Shown here piece after piece: positions 10,353 through 27,800 of a stretch of DNA of 64,000 bases. The notes under the pieces were generated by a model. The model was not told the DNA's origin, did no database searches, and worked only from the letters and a program-made list of their open reading frames with translations. How positions within the stretch are numbered: position 1 is the first letter of the stretch; each line of letters starts with the position of its first letter. The stretch is taken from positions 62,001 through 126,000 of the forward strand of contig NW_026857508.1 of the NCBI RefSeq assembly GCF_026571515.1, given 5' to 3'. A program made the position numbers and the translations under genes. Source of the DNA: Ruditapes philippinarum. Its lineage: Eukaryota.

Positions 10353-10527
10353 GAGCCGTGTCATGACAAAACCAACATAGTGCGTTTGCGACCAGCATGG
10401 ATCCAGACCAGCCTGCGCATCCGCATCCGCGCAGTCTGATCAGGATCCATGCTGTCCGCTTACAAACCCTATTACAAGTAGAGAAACTGATAGCGAACAG
10501 CATGGATTTGATCAGACTGCGTGAATG
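10353..10527. mobile_element. Truncated palindromic MITE (GACAAAACCAAC..CAGCATGGATCCAGACCAG family)
   Basis: Internal inverted repeat ggatccatgctg / cagcatggat. A fuller copy lies at 12719-12949. Confidence 0.75.
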
Positions 10528-10640
10528 CGGTGGTGCTACTAAGGTTCCTGTTCGTGCATGAAATAATACACGGAAGGGCAACTGAGGTAAAGTTGGAAGT
10601 CGCCATATGACATATACTTTGTCGGTGTGACGTAATACAA
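10528..10640 (+). mobile_element. 3' half of tRNA-derived SINE
   Basis: Matches the 3' part of the SINE at 35671-35938 (gaaataatacacggaagggca..gtcgccatatgacatatactttgtcggtgtgacgtaa). Confidence 0.8.
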
Positions 10641-12718: not shown

Positions 12719-12949
12719 AGCCGCATCACGACAAAACCAAATAATAGGTTTACGACCAGCATGGATCCAGACCAGCATGCGCATCCGCCCGCGCAGTGCG
12801 ATAAGGATCCATGCTGTTCGCCCTATAAATTTGTACCTTGTAATAACTTTGTAAGCGAACAGCATGGATCTGATCGACTGCCGCGGGAGGCGCAGGTGGT
12901 CTGGTCCTGTGGTGAAAACCCTTTTTGGGGTTTTTGTCGTGACGCGGTC
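12719..12949. mobile_element. Palindromic MITE, same family as 10353
   Basis: ccgcatcacgacaaaacc...ggtttttgtcgtgacgcgg termini, with internal gatccatgctgttcgc / gcgaacagcatggatc. Confidence 0.75.
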
Positions 12950-13561
12950 ATATCAAAAATTAAAAAAAAGATTCAACTATTTTAACAAATCCGGAAAAAT
13001 AAAAAAACGTACATGTTTTTCACATTTTTTATTACCTGCACCATAAAACCATCACAGCTTTTTTATGTTCTCTTAAAATAATACTGTTACACAACATTGG
13101 AGTAAAAAAAACAAAAAAACAATAAAAACAAAAAAATTATCAAAATACGACATGTACTTTTTATATAATTAAGTAATTGGGACAGGGGGACATTGTTTTT
13201 TTTATTTTTCTCGTTCCCCGAGATACTATTCGTGGCCACGGTTTTAGTGGGGGCCCGGATAAAAAACCTCGTCCAAAAATAATTTAAATTTTAAAATTTT
13301 AAACTTATTTTTACATGCAATTTAATTTTTTAAAATACAAAATATCAATTTGAATTTGCTTTTTTTTTATTTCTTTTCACTTGGTTTCCCATTATAATGC
13401 TTATTTGATTTTTTTAAATTTTTAAAATTTTAAATGAATTTTTTAAGTGTTTGGATAAAACGGACTACAAAAAAATATATTCTAAAATAAAAAAAAGCCC
13501 AAAAAGTAAACACTGAAATTAAAAATATTCTAAAAAATTTAAAAACTTTTAAAAACAAAAA

Positions 13562-13620: not shown

Positions 13621-14652
13621 CAACATAATTTACTGAAACGTATTGTTTAGTCGTCATATTCATTTCAAAAGAGAAACTCAGAAAATTCATCATCATGCTC
13701 GTACCTAACCACATAGTGATGCACCATATCAAGAGACATTAAAAATTACGCGTAAATGTTATTTGAACTTTATCTGTGACATGGCAAGCGTTTACATCAA
13801 AGACTGATTATCTTAAATACTATAAAAAAAGAAAAGAAAACACGAAAATTATGTCGATAGTGATATTCTATTGATAAATAGAAAACAAATAGTCAGAAAC
13901 GTTCTCTTATTTAAATATTGTGCAAAATGGTACTGCAAAACTAACAGCGCCGCACATTAATTCCACAAAAATGGTACTGCAACACAAAACTCGCCGGAAT
14001 TTAATTTCCAGATAAAAAAAATGGTACTGCACAAGAACACATTTACCATCACATTTCAATAAAGTACTTAAATGAGACTTGATCTTAATAATTCACGTGG
14101 ATATTGATTCAAACTAATTTATTTATTTATTTATGGTTGATATAGATGTCCAACTCGTGTTGTAAAAAAAGCTACCGGAGTTGACAAGGGCTAAGCAAAG
14201 CGGTGTCAGTGTCAGGCACCAGAGTCTCTGTGATATATTGTTACCTTTTTGTTTCACATAATCACCTAAATGTAAAGTATGTTTTGCTGAATGAAAGTAT
14301 ATTTATCTGTAAAAATGTATAAAAAAGACTAAACAACAATAATATATTCACTACAACTAATCAAAAGTTAACAAATGTTTTTAAAATAATAAGCACGCCC
14401 GAACCACCTCTTTAAGAGGTAGAGATCCAGTAGTCGCTGGAGGTGTCAAAATTCTGCTTTACAAATGATTGCGTACATTGTGTCTAATGTTCCTTTGTCT
14501 CACTGTCTAATGATTATTTGTACCTCAAAGCTGACTCAGAAATCATGTGGTATAAGTAGTCGTTCAACTGCGTTGAAATTGGTATTTTCTGGTTAGTTAT
14601 CCAGGAGATTCATTGAGGTGGATTGACTGCCAGGATATGGTTAAAATGTGAC

Positions 14653-15837
14653 TTATTTCATTTTCTTCTCTCCAACAGAAATGAGAAATTTCAATAAAAG
14701 CCCCAGGTCATTGATGCTTTTGATTCCATCGTCTGTTTTATATGATACGAAAGGATCGCCTTTGACCTTAACCGCTCCAGTAAGCTGACCAACATGATAA
14801 AAAAACAACAATAAAAACAAAAATAAAGTTCAAAAGCTAATATCACTTTCAACCTGGTTCTTAGGCATAATTTTTTTACTAATTCTTTCACCAAGTTTTA
14901 GATAATGTTTAAACATTTCACTAAGATTTTAGACACCACCACACTTCCTTATATTTTGTAGACTTGAATGGTTCTTATATTTTGTAGACACAAATGGTTC
15001 TGACGCAATGAACTTGCATTGAAGATACAATGTATATATTATAAATTGAGACCTGAGCGCAATAAGCTCTGTAAAACTACAATTATTATAACGGCGTCAT
15101 TCCCTATTTGTAATATAATGTGTCACACATTTCCAACGTGTCATGTAAAGTTCTTAAGTGACTGCTTCAATATCATTTAAATAAATTGTCTTATAACAAG
15201 TTTTCCATGTTTAAGATTTCTTTTTAAATATATACAACATTTAAACATTTAATGAAAAATTCCTATTTAGATAATTCTTCAAATTTTTTTTTTCCATACC
15301 TTTCCACCGCGACAACCAAGCATGACTGAATTGATATCTAGTGATTTTAAACCTAACGAGAATGACTGCAATGTATCAAGTGTTTGCGCCAATTTCCAGA
15401 CAATCGTTAGCCAATCTTTTCTCGAGGCGCGCACATCCGCATCAGGTAACTCGTACATATACACATATCCCGCCAACCTGGCACGGGAAGTCAGTCGTCG
15501 ACCTATGGCCATGCATTTAAAAGCCGCCTCTCCACTTTCTGGAAAAAAACAACAATAGCAAAAAATAGAATTGCTTTTTCGATTACCTTTGTAACCTTGT
15601 ATCAATTATCAAAACTCACTTTAGAAGTCATGATGATTTAAATAATGATAAATATGATAAATTTCATTTCATAGACTGCAGCGGAATTGCCAAAATTTCT
15701 TCAATAAGGAGGTTTAGCCTTTGAAAATGATTTGTATTTTTCTTCTCTTTAAAACTGCATCTACTTTTTGAAATTAAAAGTAACAAACCCTTTGTCAATT
15801 TCGTCAGTGACTGCTCGTCCGTACTTGGATTAAATTG
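14653..15837 (-). CDS. Last three exons: cytoplasmic tail with kinase-C-lobe-like remnant
   Basis: [16 protein letters not shown]|[48 protein letters not shown]|[43 protein letters not shown]. Splice sites and phases (0/1/0) fit. Confidence 0.65.
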
Positions 15838-18800
15838 CTGAATAATAAGATGTAATAAATAATTTTATACTTTAACATGTCAATGGTTTCTTTTACAGTT
15901 TTTGTATATTTATTTTATAACCCTACAAACTTTAGAATTCAGAAATTATTATAAAAAAGACAAGGACGAAAACGGCTTATTTACAAAATTAAGTATTTTA
16001 AAACATAAAATAACATTAAAACCAAAATGCTACCTCAACCAATCTGATCAATATAAATTGATAATATAATCATTTCAGTCCCATATGTGTGTCTACACTA
16101 ATGTAAAATGATGTCCGACATGAACTTGAAGAAAATTTATCAATGATTGCAGCAACTAAACAATCAATATCCAATCCTTGACCTTAACTCATATTATTAT
16201 GCATATGAAAAATTTAGATAAAACCGACTGGACAATGCGCTAGTGTCCGGTAGACTGAATTAAACCTACTGTAAAATCCTTATATATACTAACACGACAT
16301 CGTACGCTTAACACGTGCAAATACTATTTACAAAAATGACCATTACCATATTGTGTATACGCATCGTTCAGACAATATTTTCTCGCTATACTTGAACGAA
16401 ACGCGTAAAAATTGTATGAAGGTGTAAGCTCTAAAAGCATATTTAACAAAATAAACTTATTTGTAAAACTATTGTTTTTTAATAGATAATTTTAAAACGA
16501 AACTCAAAATCTTTTACTTTGCCTCCAATAATTGCAGTCAATGTGTATAAAATTGGATTGAGAGCAGAGTTGACCGGTAGAATAAAGACGGCTGCCCAAG
16601 CGTAAACATCTCCAGATATTACATGTCCAGTCAGTGCCAACATTCCTACAGTGTAAAGAGTACATTTATGCAATTATTATATCTTAAACTATGGGATAGA
16701 GCTTATGTAGCGTTATGTACTTTATCAATATTCCAAATTTTAAAAGCAACTTGTAGCTAACATCACATGGCATTTATTTTGACATATCATTGTTATAGTC
16801 GAAATAATTTTCATGATGTCTTAATTATTCCAAATAACACAATGCGTTGTTAACCTTAAAACTATTACTTCTTCATAGAATTTTTATCTAAGTACTTCCG
16901 GCAGACAAACAATGCTATTACCCAGTACTCCGATAGGAAACCAACACAAAAAGTCAGTTCCTACAACCAGTAGAAGATTTCTTGCAACCTTTAAGTCCCG
17001 TTTTCTTGCAGTTTCAGTCGATGTGGCAATGCCGGCAGATTTTCTTATCTCAACGAAAATAGACAACTGACCTACTGCAACCAATATAAACGTAATGAAA
17101 TTTAAACATACAAAGACAGAAAGCGAATAAGCCCAGCCAGCGGGACGGTCTCTAGTTAGTGGCAAAGCAATACAGACCCCGGACTTTGAGTAAAACTCGT
17201 TTTTGAAATACCCTACGTATACAACCGGTATAATTGCGACCATTGAGGAAAAAATCCATGTGAATAAAACACATACAACAGCTTTCTTTGTGGATATCCT
17301 TACACCGCCAAATGGAAATTTGATAACAAGTATCCTATCTAATGTAATAAGACAGAGAAATAGAACACTAGATTCCGAAGAAATAGTCGACAAAATGCCA
17401 GCAAGGTTGCACCATATACTATGTCTCCAGTAGTCGTCTACAAAAATATATCTGAAAGGATAAAAACGAAACGAACACGTTAGATACAATATTTCTCTTT
17501 CAGGGACACAAAATAACACTTTGTATTAAATAATTAAAGATGACCATTCACGGCACTATTGATAACAACTTTTATTACAAATAACGGAAATTGCTATTAC
17601 CAATTACAATATAAGTATATGTACTGGATGTACTATATTACATGAACATTTAAGCCACTTTGAGTAAATTAATTTGCAGTTTTTTAAGGTTACTAAATGC
17701 TGTAAATTGATTTTGAATCCAAATCAGAATTACCTTTTTCTGAAAGCAGAATCAGCGATTGCAATAATTAGAAGATAAAGTCCCATCATGAAATCTGCAA
17801 CGGCCAAATTTGTTACAAATATTCCAAAGCCCAACTTAAGCCGTTGCCTGTCATAATGTAATCTGTAGACAATGGTGAGTAAATTTCCTAAAAGCGCTGT
17901 TATCCCGATCAGCCATATCAAGAATTGCAATACAGAATTACGCATTAAATCATCACACGACGAAAACTCATCTTGTTTTGGGTAGCAATTTTTCTCACCG
18001 ACATAGTTAGGTCTTATACAACAGAACTTGAATGCAGGTGTGATCAATGTGTTTAAACCTATTAGTCCAGTAAATATTTCTTTATTGAACGTTCTGATAC
18101 TATTTCCTCGGAAACTGATTTCTGAAATAACCGCATCTCTGAAGGCAAAGTCTTCTATTTCCTGTATTCTATTATTAGAAAGGTCTAGCTTTTTCAGAGT
18201 TAATCCTGAAAAAGAGTCTGCTAAAATCTTTACAAGCTTGGCGTTTGCGAAATTTAAGTTTTGTATATTAGCTAACCCACTTAATGCATGTTTCGCAATG
18301 TAAGCAAGTTTAAAATTGCCATGAAGTTCAAGTTTTGCCAGATATTTAAGACTACTGAAGACATAATTAGACAAAGTGTTTATATTATTGAAACTTAAGT
18401 CTAAATGCATAAGATTCACAACTCTGTCAAAACCATGCCGAGATATGACTTCAATGTCACAACCCGATAGATTCAAAATGGACAAAGTCGGAAGAATAAG
18501 AACTGAGTCCTCCAGGATAGAACTTAGATTTACATTGAAACTGAAATCTAGGTAACGCGTATTCTTTGATATTGTTGAAATCATTGTTAGGTTGGAACTA
18601 GTGAAGCTGCAATTTGCAATTAATCCTGAACATCGGCATTGATCTGGACATTTGAAATCACACAAAGCTTCGTCATCTCCACGGGGGCATTGGATAAAGC
18701 CATCACAAACTTGCTCAATTGATATACATATTTTGCTTGATGCACATTTATAATCATGTGGACAATGAACTTTTGTAGTCACTGGAAAAAAATAAAACAT

Positions 18801-21800
18801 TAGTTTAAAAGTTTAAATCTACACATAATGTTATTATAAACATGTTCAGGAATCTTTTAACATATCGCTTGTAAAACTGACTGAAAAATGCAAGCATTTA
18901 ACTTTTGGAGATAAACATGCATCAGCATTCGAGCATTGAGATGCGCTCACTATAGTCGTGTTTATATGTTGACTACTGCTTAAGCCGGTGTTCTCGATGG
19001 ACTTTTGTTTATCAATGGTTTATGTACGTGCAGAATATGGAACAATTAAAAAATATCTTGATTTACTTACACCTTAAAATGTCTCAATCTGTATTACACT
19101 AAACAAACTTTTACAGTTTATAGTAATTTTGTTACACATAAAACGTCACAATAAACAGTTGAAATACTAGCCATTGCATAGCTCGTTGAAATATTCTGCA
19201 CCAACATCATTCAGAATTTGCCATCTCTTAACTCTAACATCTTTAACGAACTCTTTCTTTGTTTCGTCTCGGTTGTCAACAGTCACGTTAAAATTCTCTG
19301 ATAGTCTATACGTTTTGAATTCTGGTCCTAAGAGAGATACATTTCCAAAAATTTCAGATGTAAGCAATTTAGAAGTTTCGCTGTTTTCTATAAGGATAAT
19401 GCCTTTGTTACCGTCATTTGTAAATCGTACGGATTTTAAAAGTTTCCTGGCCTTGATATTATATTTACATTCAAATAATGACCCAATGCCCGTTGCATCA
19501 ACTTCTTTGTCCCGTATTTCAAGGAAATAGTCCGTGATACCAAACGGTTGCAATGGTTTTGATGCTTTATACCCTAGACTTCTCACAATGTTTGTACGAG
19601 TGCTGAACTGCCTCGCAAACTTATCTATATCAGGTCCATCGGAGCTTTCTTCATCGTAGATGATCAGGATTTCATTGTCTGACGATTCACATCCTTTAAA
19701 ATTTACCATACAACAAGTATTAGACAGAACTTTGGAGAGAGTAATGCATAGAGTTATAATTCTTGATAGGATAAACATGTATATATATTCCGTGTACTTT
19801 GTTCGTTATTTCAATAATTTTAATGTTCACAACCCTGACATTAACTTTAAAAGGTCAAAAGTCAACTGTGTAATTTGAGCGTATAACTATGTAACTGAGT
19901 TGATTGCAATATCATGCTGAATGCATATTTTGGGTAACTTTCCCGAATGCTCGTATTTATTAAAATTAACATATTGAGCAATAACTTTGATCTTGCACTT
20001 AAGATGTTCCGCTTTGCACTGTTATGTGTTTTTCATTTATACAGTTATGATGATGACGTCAATTACAGGTCCGAAGTGCCGTGGTGTTTGCTTGATGCAC
20101 ATTTTATCAAATATTTGTATTTTATATTTACACAATGTCACAGTAAGAAACAATCTACATTGTATTTTACTTTTTGGTGTTAAAAGATTTATCTTCCCAG
20201 CTAGGTATACTTATTCTTTGACTATCACTTTTACTATCAAACCCTCAACATATATAGTAATAACATAACGATAATCATAAAGCTACTTTACCACAATTTT
20301 CCTCATCTTCCCCCGAGGGACATTGTAATTCACCATCGCATAAAAAGCGCAAAGGGATACAGTAACTGCCTGGACATTTCACTGTGTTTTCTGGACATTC
20401 AAATGCATCTAAAATAAAATTTTTTAGACTTTATCAAATTGTCTTTATCGAGATGCAAAATGTGTCTCAAACTAATCTTCCCCTAACTTTAACTATTATG
20501 ATATATATCGATCACTTATCCAAAATCTTGAAAAACCAGGGCCTTTATGAATCCGTACTGTTGTTGACATAAAACCGACAGATAGGTATTCCTAGATATA
20601 CTTTCAGAGTCTGGTTGTTGTTAATAAATGTTTAAAGAAAGATTATTTGTATTAATAAAAAAAAAGAAAATTGCATTACAATACAATCTCAATATTACTT
20701 CCTATGAAATGTAACAGTCTGATATCAAACCGTCGGACACACTTTTGAAATTGTCAAAACAGTGAGTTCGTTGATGATTTCCCAACATTTCCCAAACATG
20801 TGACTAAGGCAAAGACAGAAACACAAAATTTATGACGAACTGATTAATAAATGTACAAACATATATGCTTCTTTAATGGCTATTCCTTATATGTTTTTAA
20901 TATCCTTTAATGATGTGATTTTATGATCTGAACAGAAGTCAGACTGAAAACCAATCATCTTTGTTAGAATACTTTGTACTTTGTTGTTACTAGTCCAGAA
21001 TAATCAGTAGATTTGCAATATAAATAAGATGAAACTATGAACTTACAACAGTTCTTGATATGACTTCCGTCTCTACAGCCAATGAGGAATCCAGTGTTGT
21101 CTACATCATAGATACATCGTAAATAAGCGGGAATATGTTTACCATTGATGTCACATACAAAATCATTGTCCTTAGGATAAAAACCTGAATATAGAGTGTA
21201 TGGGTGATCTTCAATGATGAACTATCAATTAAAACAACAATCTATACTTTTTGACCAATTAAGATACACTTGTCATGTAACTTCATAACCTTCAAATCTT
21301 TAGCAATTTCTAAACTGATATGTTCCAAACATAAAGTAAAATCACACTTGATTATTTACACTCTCAAACTGAAAATATGTTTCGTTTGTACCGAATTCAC
21401 AGAAATTCTTAAGAAAGTTTGAATTGAATATAATGCATACAATTTTGATCCAAAATAAGAAATGTAATAATAAAATGTAAAGATTGAATACGAAGAGATA
21501 TAAAATGAATTTAAATCGAGTAGCACAAATCTTATCTTGTTTCATATTGTTTACACCACTTGCCTCTCGCCGCTTTAGGTTCGAATACCGCCGGCAACCT
21601 GTATTCACTGATTATCGGTGGGTCTACTTAGGTGTCCGCTCGTGCCGGAAATAATACACAGAAGAGCACCTGGCGAGCATTTCAGTAACATTCCATATGT
21701 TTTGCGTATCATTTTCTTTAAACGTGGACTTATGCAAAACTTAAATTTACGTTATTTGCGTTTCTACCAAAGCATGAAAGTCGCTATATGTCCTCCGCCG

Positions 21801-24800: not shown

Positions 24801-27800
24801 TCATGTGAGGTGGGAAGCTATCCGGCAAAATAACAACGCTTCTAATCTTGAACATGATCATGCCAATAATCCCAATAATAGGACACATGAGGTCATCCTA
24901 AAGAGTCGCTATTGTAATAACTTAACATCCCTCCTCTATACAAACACAAATAAAAGTAACAAATGTTTATTTTATACTTATTACTGAAATAACATTTCAA
25001 TGTAATTATCTAATAGAAACCATCTAATCACTTCACTATCGTAAGAACAAACCCATTGTATAAAGTGAAGATTTCCTAAACCCAGCCTCCCAAATATCCT
25101 GACAGGAGGAGAACCCTTCTCTAGTACAATATTGTTCATCGGCTCCGTCTTCACAGTGGGCATGCTCATCACATCGGAGACGTTTTGGAATGCATCGCCC
25201 AATATCACAAAGGAATGCAAGCTCTTCATTGCATTTATCTGAAATGAAATTAATGTATAGACGATATCTTTATTTAAAAATTGTGACGAATACAAAGATA
25301 ATTTAAAGACCATGTGAAATTTTCTGAGCCAATAGTGAGTTCAAACATCTGTTTGCACTTAATTTTGTTTATGAAACAGGATGAGTTTGAACGGATTTGA
25401 CCGTTCTTTTTTGGAATGAATAAACTTAACGGATACGTGTATATTGTTAATGACTGATCAAATTTTGCCGAGGTTTCACTGTATCTGGATCAGATCAAAC
25501 ATACAGTATTTTTTTGATGAGACATTCGGCATGAAACAAATATTCAGTTATTTTGGAAATCACTAAGCTAACAAGGATTCTTAATGCAGAAACATCGAGG
25601 AATATAATGATGCAAAATCTGATTCATACAACACGCAATCTCATCCGAGCCATCTGCGCAGTGTTTTATAGAATCGCACCGTTTGTTCAATGAGATACAT
25701 GGTCCATTGTTACACTGGTACTCAGTCAAAATTGAGCACGGCTGGAAATCTGCAATAAGATAATCACCACAATACTTCTGATTTTTATTTCTTTTTTGTT
25801 GATTTTTATTCCAAATATTTAAAGATTCAAATATATTGTTTCGAGACTAAGTTGGTTGCGCAATCGCAGTCCTGAATTCACAACTGTAATAAATATATCA
25901 TTGATTATTTAATAAAGTACACACAGAAATTTCCTTTCGTATTTGAAACATTGATATATGTGTATGCATAATTCCCAGTCAGTTTTGAGTACAGGATGAC
26001 GGTTCATCAAAATATTTGTCTACATTTAAGAGTTTGACAAAACATGAAATCTGCTTGCTGTTTAAAGCATACAAGGCATTCATTTTGCTGTTGTTCTTTT
26101 CAATCAAGACAAAATATTTGTTGTTTTATTCTATTCAAACATGTAATAATTTAATCATAAAATTAATATATAAATGTAAGTCATGAATTCAGGGTTTTGC
26201 TTGATTCAATCGAGACATGATGCAACATATTTTTTTTTTAAATAATTGATATGAAATCTTAATGTCGTTTTATTCATACAAGACAAACAACCTTGTTGCT
26301 GGTTTGTTCATTTTATGAATACAAAGCATGCTGACGTAGCGTTGCAAGATAAACAATTGAAAAGTGAAGAAACATACCACAGTACTCATCCGAACCATCA
26401 TTACAGTCAACAACATAATTACAAACAAGACTGATATGGATACAGTCTCCGTCGTTACATCGGAACTGGTCGTTGGAGCACATACGGTTTCCTTTAGACA
26501 CTTAAATATTAAATAACATAAATAAGGCTTGAAAAAGGAAGGATATGACAAAACAAAATCAACAAGCCATAGCTGCATTCTGTGAACATATCAATAGTCA
26601 AATACAAAATAATCCCTTTGTGTTTTCAAAATTAGTTTAAAATAACGCAGTATAAATATGAAGGTTAAGACATTATTTCATTTAATTAATAAATTTCGAT
26701 TTTATTAAAATCAGTTACACATATACACTTTACAAGTTCATATAGCAGAGAAGTCAAATTTCCATATAAAACTTACCTACACTATCGTCCTGACAATTCA
26801 TCTCATCAGATGCATCAAGGCAGTCGATTACCCCATCACATCTTGCGATGACAGATATAAATTCTTGAGAGTTACATCTTAAGATAGAATCCCGAAAAGA
26901 ATATGGAAGAGGAACGTTTGTAAAATTACTGTTGACATTTCTTGCCTTTGCCATCGAATGGACTAAGTAATGAAAATTGTAAGCACAGTTTTAATGAAAT
27001 AACAAAAGGACCACACGTAGTGATAACGCTCGTTTGTTGAACATTTTGAAAGGTGTATTACTTCAAAATCATTTCTTTTTTGTGTAACAACTGCACCTTG
27101 TAAGACAATTAAGTATTAAACCTATACAAAAAACAAGTATTTCAAGTTTCATGTTCATAAAAATGGTTTAATAAATGGCTACATTTACATATTTGCCCGG
27201 CAAGGATGACAACGAAGCCTTTTGAAATAGACGAAATTTTAATTTGTTAAACGATATAAACTGTAGATATAAATTTATAAAAATGGTATTTGGTACAATA
27301 CTTTACTATATAATGAACGAATGGTGTCAAACACATGTCCTATAAAGAGCATTGTAGATTTACTTTATATGAAATTATTCATTTAGTTTACTTGCATGTG
27401 TACTGCAGATTTGTACATAAATTGAATAGCTAATTACCTGTATACGGACACCCAACTTCGTCACGTTTGTTAATGCAATCAAACTTCCCATCACATCTAG
27501 CAAATTTCGTAATTTGTACCTCTCCATCGCATGTAAACATACTGTGTGCAACGGTTTCATGACGCACTTCATAGTTCCTCGGTTCTTGTGGATCTGCATA
27601 CACATTTGAATATGATAATTTACATGTAAATTATAGTTTTACATTTCAATAGCTTGAAATTGCCAGGTTAGCATGAAGAAAGGTGAAAACTATATATTAA
27701 GTATTTGTTTTATGTTTCTTTTGTGCTACATATAAAATTTTACCATCTTCTCTTAGGTTAAGAGCCTGATATCTATACTTTTTATTAAAAAGACATGTTC

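Follow-up and report, generated by a model that had tools for sequence, protein, structure and literature searches.

The cytoplasmic tail of an LGR from the clam Ruditapes philippinarum very probably represents a catalytically dead domain derived from the core of a protein-kinase C-lobe, which would serve the receptor as a non-catalytic interaction or regulatory module. The receptor gene lies on the minus strand of the window (the whole 64,000-nt stretch of DNA analysed) and encodes an LDLa and LRR ectodomain, a rhodopsin-type 7TM region and a tail of 139 aa. Residues ~20-139 of this tail are predicted to fold into a compact unit derived from a Ser/Thr protein-kinase domain, of which only the C-lobe core would be left, the N-lobe, the activation segment and αG-I having been deleted.

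Public RNA data mapped over positions 13800-19000 comprised assembled contigs from three runs, X1, X2 and X4, each from a different study. RNA is the recorded type of X1 and only the guessed type of X2 and X4, yet the contigs of these two are spliced, and one 2335-nt contig from X2 covers every exon in Table 1. The RNA contigs skip five introns (17452-17733, 16646-16921, 15838-16517, 15539-15788 and 14785-15299), all of them GT-AG, which shows that splicing joins the tail exons to the 7TM region. Fusion of these exons to the receptor, which an earlier note on this DNA had proposed, is thus borne out by GT-AG junctions in contigs of three studies, and the tail peptides that the note had quoted after TM7 are present in the minus-strand frame where it placed them. 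Its exon structure was right for exons A and B but overlooked a 49-nt micro-exon (15837-15789) between TM7 and exon A. The joints of this micro-exon (16518/15837 and 15789/15538) were found in contigs of X1, X2 and X4, and it restores the frame between the TM7 exon (phase 0) and exon A (phase 1). Acceptors (AG) and donors (GT) at both tail exons are canonical, and exons A and B are in phase. The amino-acid coding part of exon B spans 14784-14656 and is followed by the stop codon (14655-14653). The exon-by-exon product is identical to the NCBI model P0018 (‘GRL101-like’, Ruditapes philippinarum), which also contains the micro-exon.

Pfam searches of the upstream open reading frames matched LRR_8 (E = 1.3e-20) and 7tm_1, the latter starting in the LRR exon and matching most clearly in the TM3-TM6 exon (7.3e-22). 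The Ldl_recept_a match in the LRR exon (E = 2.8e-4, 21.5 bits) is just below the gathering cut-off of 24.1. The combination of an LDLa and LRR ectodomain with a rhodopsin-type 7TM region places the receptor among the type C, GRL101-like LGRs.

Table 1. Exons of the receptor gene and structural elements of its cytoplasmic tail (tail residues are counted from the Gln at 15837)
Feature	Positions	Strand	Tail residues	Basis or reading
Exon with one LDLa module, LRR ectodomain, hinge and TM1-TM2	17734-18782	-		Pfam; X2 RNA contig covering 17734-18782
Exon with TM3-TM6	16922-17451	-		Pfam 7tm_1 (7.3e-22); RNA joints 17451/17734 and 16644/16921, cut moved by +1 to GT-AG
Exon with TM7 (NPILY motif), phase 0 end after ...IIGGK	16518-16645	-		Sequence and RNA contigs
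49-nt micro-exon, start of tail, ends with first base of a Glu codon	15789-15837	-	1-16	RNA contigs; conserved FNPS..EQ motif
Tail exon A (N-terminal helix, αE, catalytic-loop remnant, β7)	15300-15538	-		79 codons and a split codon
Tail exon B, coding part (β8, DFG remnant, 7-residue stub, αF)	14653-14784	-		43 codons and TAA
3' UTR	14448-14652	-		RNA contigs extend to 14448-14380; polymorphic between individuals (substitutions, indels)
Long helix			6-31	No sure kinase counterpart
αE equivalent	15363-15422	-	56-75	AF2 helix 56-75
Catalytic-loop remnant	15327-15362	-	76-87	Alignment columns and register from profile alignments
β7			88-93	Reads VMLGCR
β8 and DFG remnant	14746-14778	-		Register from P0041 alignment to ULK2 β8-DFG and from A7 columns
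β8			99-104	Reads GAVKVK
DFG remnant			107-109	Reads PFV; only Phe survives
Activation-segment replacement				Stub of about 7 residues between the DFG+5 position and αF
αF equivalent	14659-14736	-	113-138	AF2 helix 113-138, then stop

At its 5' end, the open reading frame of the LRR exon runs on to 18800 and the 5' end of the exon is not defined. P0018 begins at an internal Met within this exon and looks 5'-truncated. More 5' exons of this gene probably lie on the minus strand at 19167-19778, 20275-20382, 25568-25729, 26313-26501 and 26754-26954; one of them holds an open reading frame of ~200 aa that resembles the N-terminal region of the Mercenaria protein P0016 (NEI.II.DEESS...VRVKRW...GAEYF), and the other four are LDLa-like. 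In the 3' UTR, a stretch of ~31 nt at 14575-14606 is common to many other transcripts, with reads and contigs that continue into unrelated flanks, and is probably a short dispersed repeat. Elsewhere in the window, two copies of a GC-richer element (10397-10561 and 12761-12985, both on the plus strand) stand out from AT-rich intergenic DNA; the open reading frames of both start with MDPDQ.AHP..., and the pair probably stems from a dispersed repeat or from part of a transposon.

We examined the relationship of the tail to kinases with single sequences and with profiles of increasing depth. A Pfam scan at E ≤ 10 returned no kinase model for the clam gene's own exons or for P0018, and phmmer searches of single exons against the PDB matched no kinase. 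One match, zinc-finger-like and covering the first 29 residues (E = 0.76), was put down to chance. A profile of 11 exon-A paralogs gave only two PDB matches, the PAN3 pseudokinase (E = 0.034) and PERK (E = 0.63), both aligned at αE and the catalytic loop. With a 19-sequence profile, kinases accounted for 24 of 26 matches (the GCN2 pseudokinase, VRK3, PAN3, PAK1-3 and EGFR). Alignment A7, which comprises 21 full tails including P0041 and has an unbroken stretch of P0018 as its first row, gave 598 PDB matches at E ≤ 10, and nearly all of the best 60 are kinases, led by the GCN2 pseudokinase (E = 1.5e-4 and 8.2e-4) and STK33 (1.1e-3) and followed by BRSK2, PAK, BRAF, KSR and FGFR2. Kinase matches thus strengthen as the tail profile improves from 11 to 19 to 21 sequences. 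Weak second alignments of A7 place the ..DIYQLG.. stretch of the tails on kinase subdomain IX, in the correct order. A profile of exon B alone matched no kinase and produced one chance match, PsbO.

At the level of sequence, the clearest link of the tails to kinases is the Mercenaria paralog P0041, the tail of which reads ...YKEIKPENVLI... and so keeps a K-P-E-N string. This tail matches Pfam Pkinase at positions 95-134 with E = 5.7e-4 and 19.8 bits, below the gathering score of 31.7. When searched alone against the PDB, it matched 192 sequences at E ≤ 1, the 60 listed being nearly all Ser/Thr kinases (among them a CDPK-like kinase at 7e-4), and its GVRIKQISIAFSR stretch was aligned to the β8-DFG stretch of ULK2. 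The whole length of P0041 also fits the A7 tail profile (E = 7.5e-31), which includes P0041 as a row.

Among 1.84 billion representative proteins, the exon-A profile had 13 matches at E ≤ 1e-3, namely exon-sized fragments, the Mercenaria receptor P0008 and P0013. The last of these, a JGI metagenome protein of 1175 aa with four tandem kinase domains, is the sole full kinase among the matches, and its catalytic loops are partly degenerate (HGDL, HRNL and HGHL). Its E value of 4.5e-4 is inflated because four related, non-independent repeats of 10-15 bits each are summed. None of 2000 shuffles scored above 11.7 bits, against 36.5 observed for P0013, and hhalign of the tail with the four P0013 kinase domains gave P = 0.0012 over 42 columns. 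The tails therefore show significant sequence similarity to the protein kinase superfamily (PF00069/PF07714), at scores that stay below the Pfam gathering threshold.

We also predicted the fold of the tail with AF2. An earlier run on a Mercenaria tail, with a shallow alignment of fragments only, reached a pLDDT of 57, and Foldseek and VIA-align found no kinase match for that model; it was superseded by the model of the clam tail built with the 21 full tails of A7 (mean pLDDT 90.9, pTM 0.80). The latter has helices at residues 6-31, 56-75 and 113-138 and strands at 41-43, 78-80, 88-93, 96-104 and 107-109. In Foldseek searches of the PDB with this model, all 50 best matches are protein kinases, including CLK2/3, MK2, MNK1, CHK2, PLK4, STK33, STK40, RNase L and MET, with E values of only 0.04-0.14, probabilities up to 0.99 and TM scores by query of 0.4-0.52 over ~100 columns. 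VIA-align, which is independent of Foldseek but was given the same A7-based model, also placed kinases or pseudokinases in all 50 best positions among 48,161 representative chains (Rad53, Z 10.9, rmsd 3.6, 104 aligned residues; RNase L, 9.6; PAN3, 9.3); 29 chains reached Z ≥ 8, many of them near this caution line. For two Mercenaria tails modelled in the ESM Atlas, 8 of the 10 and 8 of the 9 structural neighbour rows were kinase clusters, at TM 0.55-0.64 over 103-123 residues.

The checks by AlphaFold and Foldseek suggested in the earlier note thus came out in favour of a kinase fold, and the in-order resemblance to kinase subdomains VIa-IX that it had seen by eye is beyond chance, given the in-register A7 profile matches and the AF2, Foldseek and VIA-align results. 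Alternatively, the tail might be a lineage-specific small α/β domain of independent origin that converged on a kinase-like arrangement, in which an amphipathic helix with LHS at its end is followed by short hydrophobic strands and then by a long helix. The lack of any Pfam match for the clam tail, the marginal E values obtained before the 21-tail profile, the failure of exon B alone to match a kinase and Foldseek E values above 0.01 would all be expected if this were so. Convergence accounts poorly, however, for the K-P-E-N string and the ULK2-alignable β8-DFG stretch retained in P0041, for the conservation of the subdomain-IX Asp and Gly among the tails, for the kinase order of the elements and for the top rank of kinases with A7, Foldseek, VIA-align and ESM Atlas alike (the two fold searches sharing one A7-based AF2 model). 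Therefore, we consider it improbable that the likeness arose by convergence, and favour descent of the tail from a kinase domain.

Within the tail, αE aligns with αE of PAN3, PERK, GCN2, PAK and EGFR, and weak in-order HMM alignments place αF on the D-I-W-S-x-G region of GCN2 and STK33. The AF2 model retains the C-lobe core fold of the superfamily, that is, αE, the catalytic-loop strands, β7, β8 and αF. The N-lobe (with the Gly-rich loop, the VAIK Lys and αC), the activation segment with APE and αG-αI are lost, as are the HRD Asp, the catalytic Asn and the DFG Asp; the protein ends right after αF. In the catalytic-loop remnant, HRD is replaced by LKS, the Lys position by Asp and the catalytic Asn by Ser. 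The earlier note had listed HRD, the catalytic Asn, DFG, the activation loop and the N-lobe as missing, which is correct except that the Phe of DFG survives (PFV). Its match to αF holds for the helix and for the subdomain-IX Gly (G124) but not for the Asp, which is Ser in this gene, though kept in its relatives in 13 of 21 tails; the αF Gly is present in 20 of 21. Its view of the tail as a pseudokinase remnant agrees with the homology of the tail to the kinase C-lobe core, in profile and in predicted fold, and with the loss of all catalytic motifs.

Because the catalytic residues are replaced (LKS, Ser and PFV) and much of the kinase domain is deleted, the tail would neither bind ATP nor transfer phosphate in the manner of a kinase. 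That it is nevertheless an enzyme or nucleotide binder, an atypical minimal kinase, seems to us very improbable. The catalytic-loop Asn is retained in five of the 21 tails (P0027, P0028, P0029, P0037 and P0041), to which P0041 adds K-P-E-N, in favour of this reading. Yet the catalytic-Asp column holds Asp in a single tail (P0039), the DFG Asp is retained in none, and the ~35 domain residues that precede αE leave no room for an N-lobe, a Gly-rich loop or a VAIK Lys; the RNA joints allow no further exons there, and tblastn with kinase domains found no kinase-like exon in the window or in the paralog LGR loci. A dead C-lobe core thus remains the preferred reading. We also considered whether some paralog might carry a fuller kinase domain, a check that the earlier note had proposed for paralog and ortholog tails, and rejected this: kinase tblastn was empty, and PF00069/PF07714 was found in 0 of the 120 best LGR relatives.

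The tail domain is under purifying selection. Across the two tail exons, for which the earlier note had asked for dN/dS, paralog ratios range from 0.07 to 0.5, with values of 0.3-0.5 in exon A (one very young pair, which has few changes, excepted) and 0.07-0.28 in exon B. All four differences within the tail coding sequence among RNA contigs (14722, 14731, 14749 and 15351) are synonymous third-position changes, compared with 17 substitutions and several indels in the neighbouring 3' UTR. Compared with the closest Mercenaria homolog, the 7TM region is 84% identical, the LRR part 66% and the tail 48%; within the tail, the figures are 75% for the micro-exon (Mercenaria P0016), 39% for exon A and 53% for exon B. 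Within the tail, conservation is highest in the micro-exon motif, F-N-P-S-x-x-E-Q-S/T, which may represent a linear motif or a group of phospho-acceptor sites immediately following helix 8. In exon B, the conserved polar residues are the T, K, S and K of LTG..K..PF.S.K, and these, together with the micro-exon motif, are candidate contact or phosphorylation sites.

The exon-A peptide has 14 paralogous exons in the genome, and the exon-A profile finds at least 44 copies; in every paralog locus for which flanking sequence was examined, LDLa/LRR is followed by 7TM, exon A and exon B, in this order. Full tails occur in dozens of annotated GRL101-like proteins from Mercenaria and Ruditapes and also in Haliotis rubra, H. 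asinina and Patella vulgata. A word search with the tail region alone returned two Mercenaria proteins only. The tail domain is absent from the LGRs of Mya, Pecten, Ylistrum, Biomphalaria, Bulinus, Littorina, Lottia and H. rufescens, all of which stop shortly after TM7 (roughly 5-60 residues in Mya, Pecten, Biomphalaria, Littorina, Lottia and H. rufescens). Since it is present in some LGRs and absent from others, the tail marks one LGR subfamily, which is greatly expanded in venerid clams (dozens of genes). The tail appears to predate the split between bivalves and gastropods.

Near-identical copies of exon A on contigs C67, C8843, C3616, C4853, C7566 and C15487 (loci L030-L036) form a recently expanded subfamily in which the exon reads ...ERGSAILQYTDFSRSV...ISYQLANYL.LLHNSSITVENLSETN..., and four matches on contig C67 suggest tandem clusters of LGR genes. 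One Mercenaria protein, P0022 (641 aa), has a tail of only 89 residues that consists of the start of exon A and the whole of exon B, without αE-β7; either this paralog has been reduced further, or the gene model skips an exon.

The position of the domain bears on how it might act. It would sit directly under the receptor core, ~16-20 residues past the end of TM7, where a non-catalytic module may dock a signalling partner or gate the access of G protein or arrestin; it might bind an outside partner, as in docking, or act on the receptor itself by gating or dimerisation. Pseudokinase domains often act via dimerisation. It is possible, although we hold it to be less likely, that, instead of recruiting an outside partner, the module acts inside a receptor or from one receptor to another: it might provide the surface for dimerisation, or plug the receptor core in competition with G protein or arrestin. 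The short distance from TM7, bridged by a predicted long helix, and the frequency of dimerisation as a mode of pseudokinase domains are consistent with such a role, but the conserved polar residues on the exon-B surface (LTG..K..PF.S.K) fit a partner-binding site equally well. By analogy with KIND domains and pseudokinases, a role of the kinase-derived tail as a docking scaffold is plausible. The tail offers a testable handle on the signalling of orphan mollusc LGRs.

Among known receptors, the closest to the clam protein are GRL101 and the type C LGRs (relaxin-receptor-like, RXFP1/2), which have the same LDLa, LRR and rhodopsin 7TM arrangement and give the clam gene its NCBI product name, GRL101-like; other mollusc LGRs (Mya, Pecten, Biomphalaria, Littorina, Lottia and Haliotis rufescens) differ from it in having no kinase-fold tail. 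Tail-bearing proteins in public databases are annotated merely as GRL101-like. The tail domain family is not yet modelled by Pfam, so the tails are unannotated in public proteomes. Our literature searches found no earlier report of a kinase-fold GPCR tail in bilaterian animals and no paper tying GRL101-like receptors to a kinase-like domain.

Fusions of GPCRs with kinases are reported by a recent survey from protists and, among animals, only from sponges (PMC12716839), in agreement with the earlier note's remark that they are very unusual in animals. The GPCR-TKL/K and GPCR-TK proteins (choanoflagellates, sponges, oomycetes and amoebozoans) and GPCR-PIPK likewise have a 7TM region followed by a C-terminal kinase-fold domain. 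These known fusions carry complete, Pfam-detectable kinase domains on unrelated 7TM regions, whereas the clam receptor joins a bilaterian LGR 7TM region to a dead kinase fragment below the Pfam threshold. It thus does not belong to that class in the sense of having a complete kinase domain detectable by Pfam or InterPro, its tail being a fragment of ~120 residues. Pseudokinases (the GCN2 pseudokinase, PAN3, VRK3, RNase L, IRAK3 and NFR5) provide the best sequence and structure matches and show similar degeneration of the catalytic loop, but they keep the full bilobal fold, of which the clam domain keeps less than half.

We can only tentatively suggest how the tail arose and what it does now: it may be the relic of a fusion, older than the bivalve-gastropod split, between an LGR and a Ser/Thr kinase of the K-P-E-N type, since reduced to a new, self-folding mini C-lobe that provides this receptor subfamily with a G-protein-independent output or a docking site of its own. 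If this were true, bilaterians would have their first example of a GPCR with a kinase-fold tail, and a KIND-like module would have arisen twice, independently. On the main reading, a bilaterian GPCR family of hormone-receptor type carries a kinase-fold domain in venerid clams, abalone and limpet. As a natural minimal kinase C-lobe core (αE, β-sheet and αF), the domain is also relevant to the biology of pseudokinases and KIND domains.

KIND domains are non-catalytic C-lobes that bind peptide motifs, as the KIND domain of Spir binds the FSI peptide of formins (PMC11231147). Like them, the clam tail is a kinase C-lobe without N-lobe or catalysis, and KIND has been retained for protein interaction. 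The resemblance is one of type and not of family membership. Assignment of the tail to the KIND family itself (PF16474) was rejected, as neither P0018 nor nine relatives gave a Pfam KIND match at E ≤ 10, and the clam tail appears to have been derived independently. In contrast to KIND, which belongs to a cytosolic scaffold protein, the clam domain is placed at the C-terminus of a GPCR, and it is much shorter, ending after αF at ~120 residues without an activation segment or αG-I.
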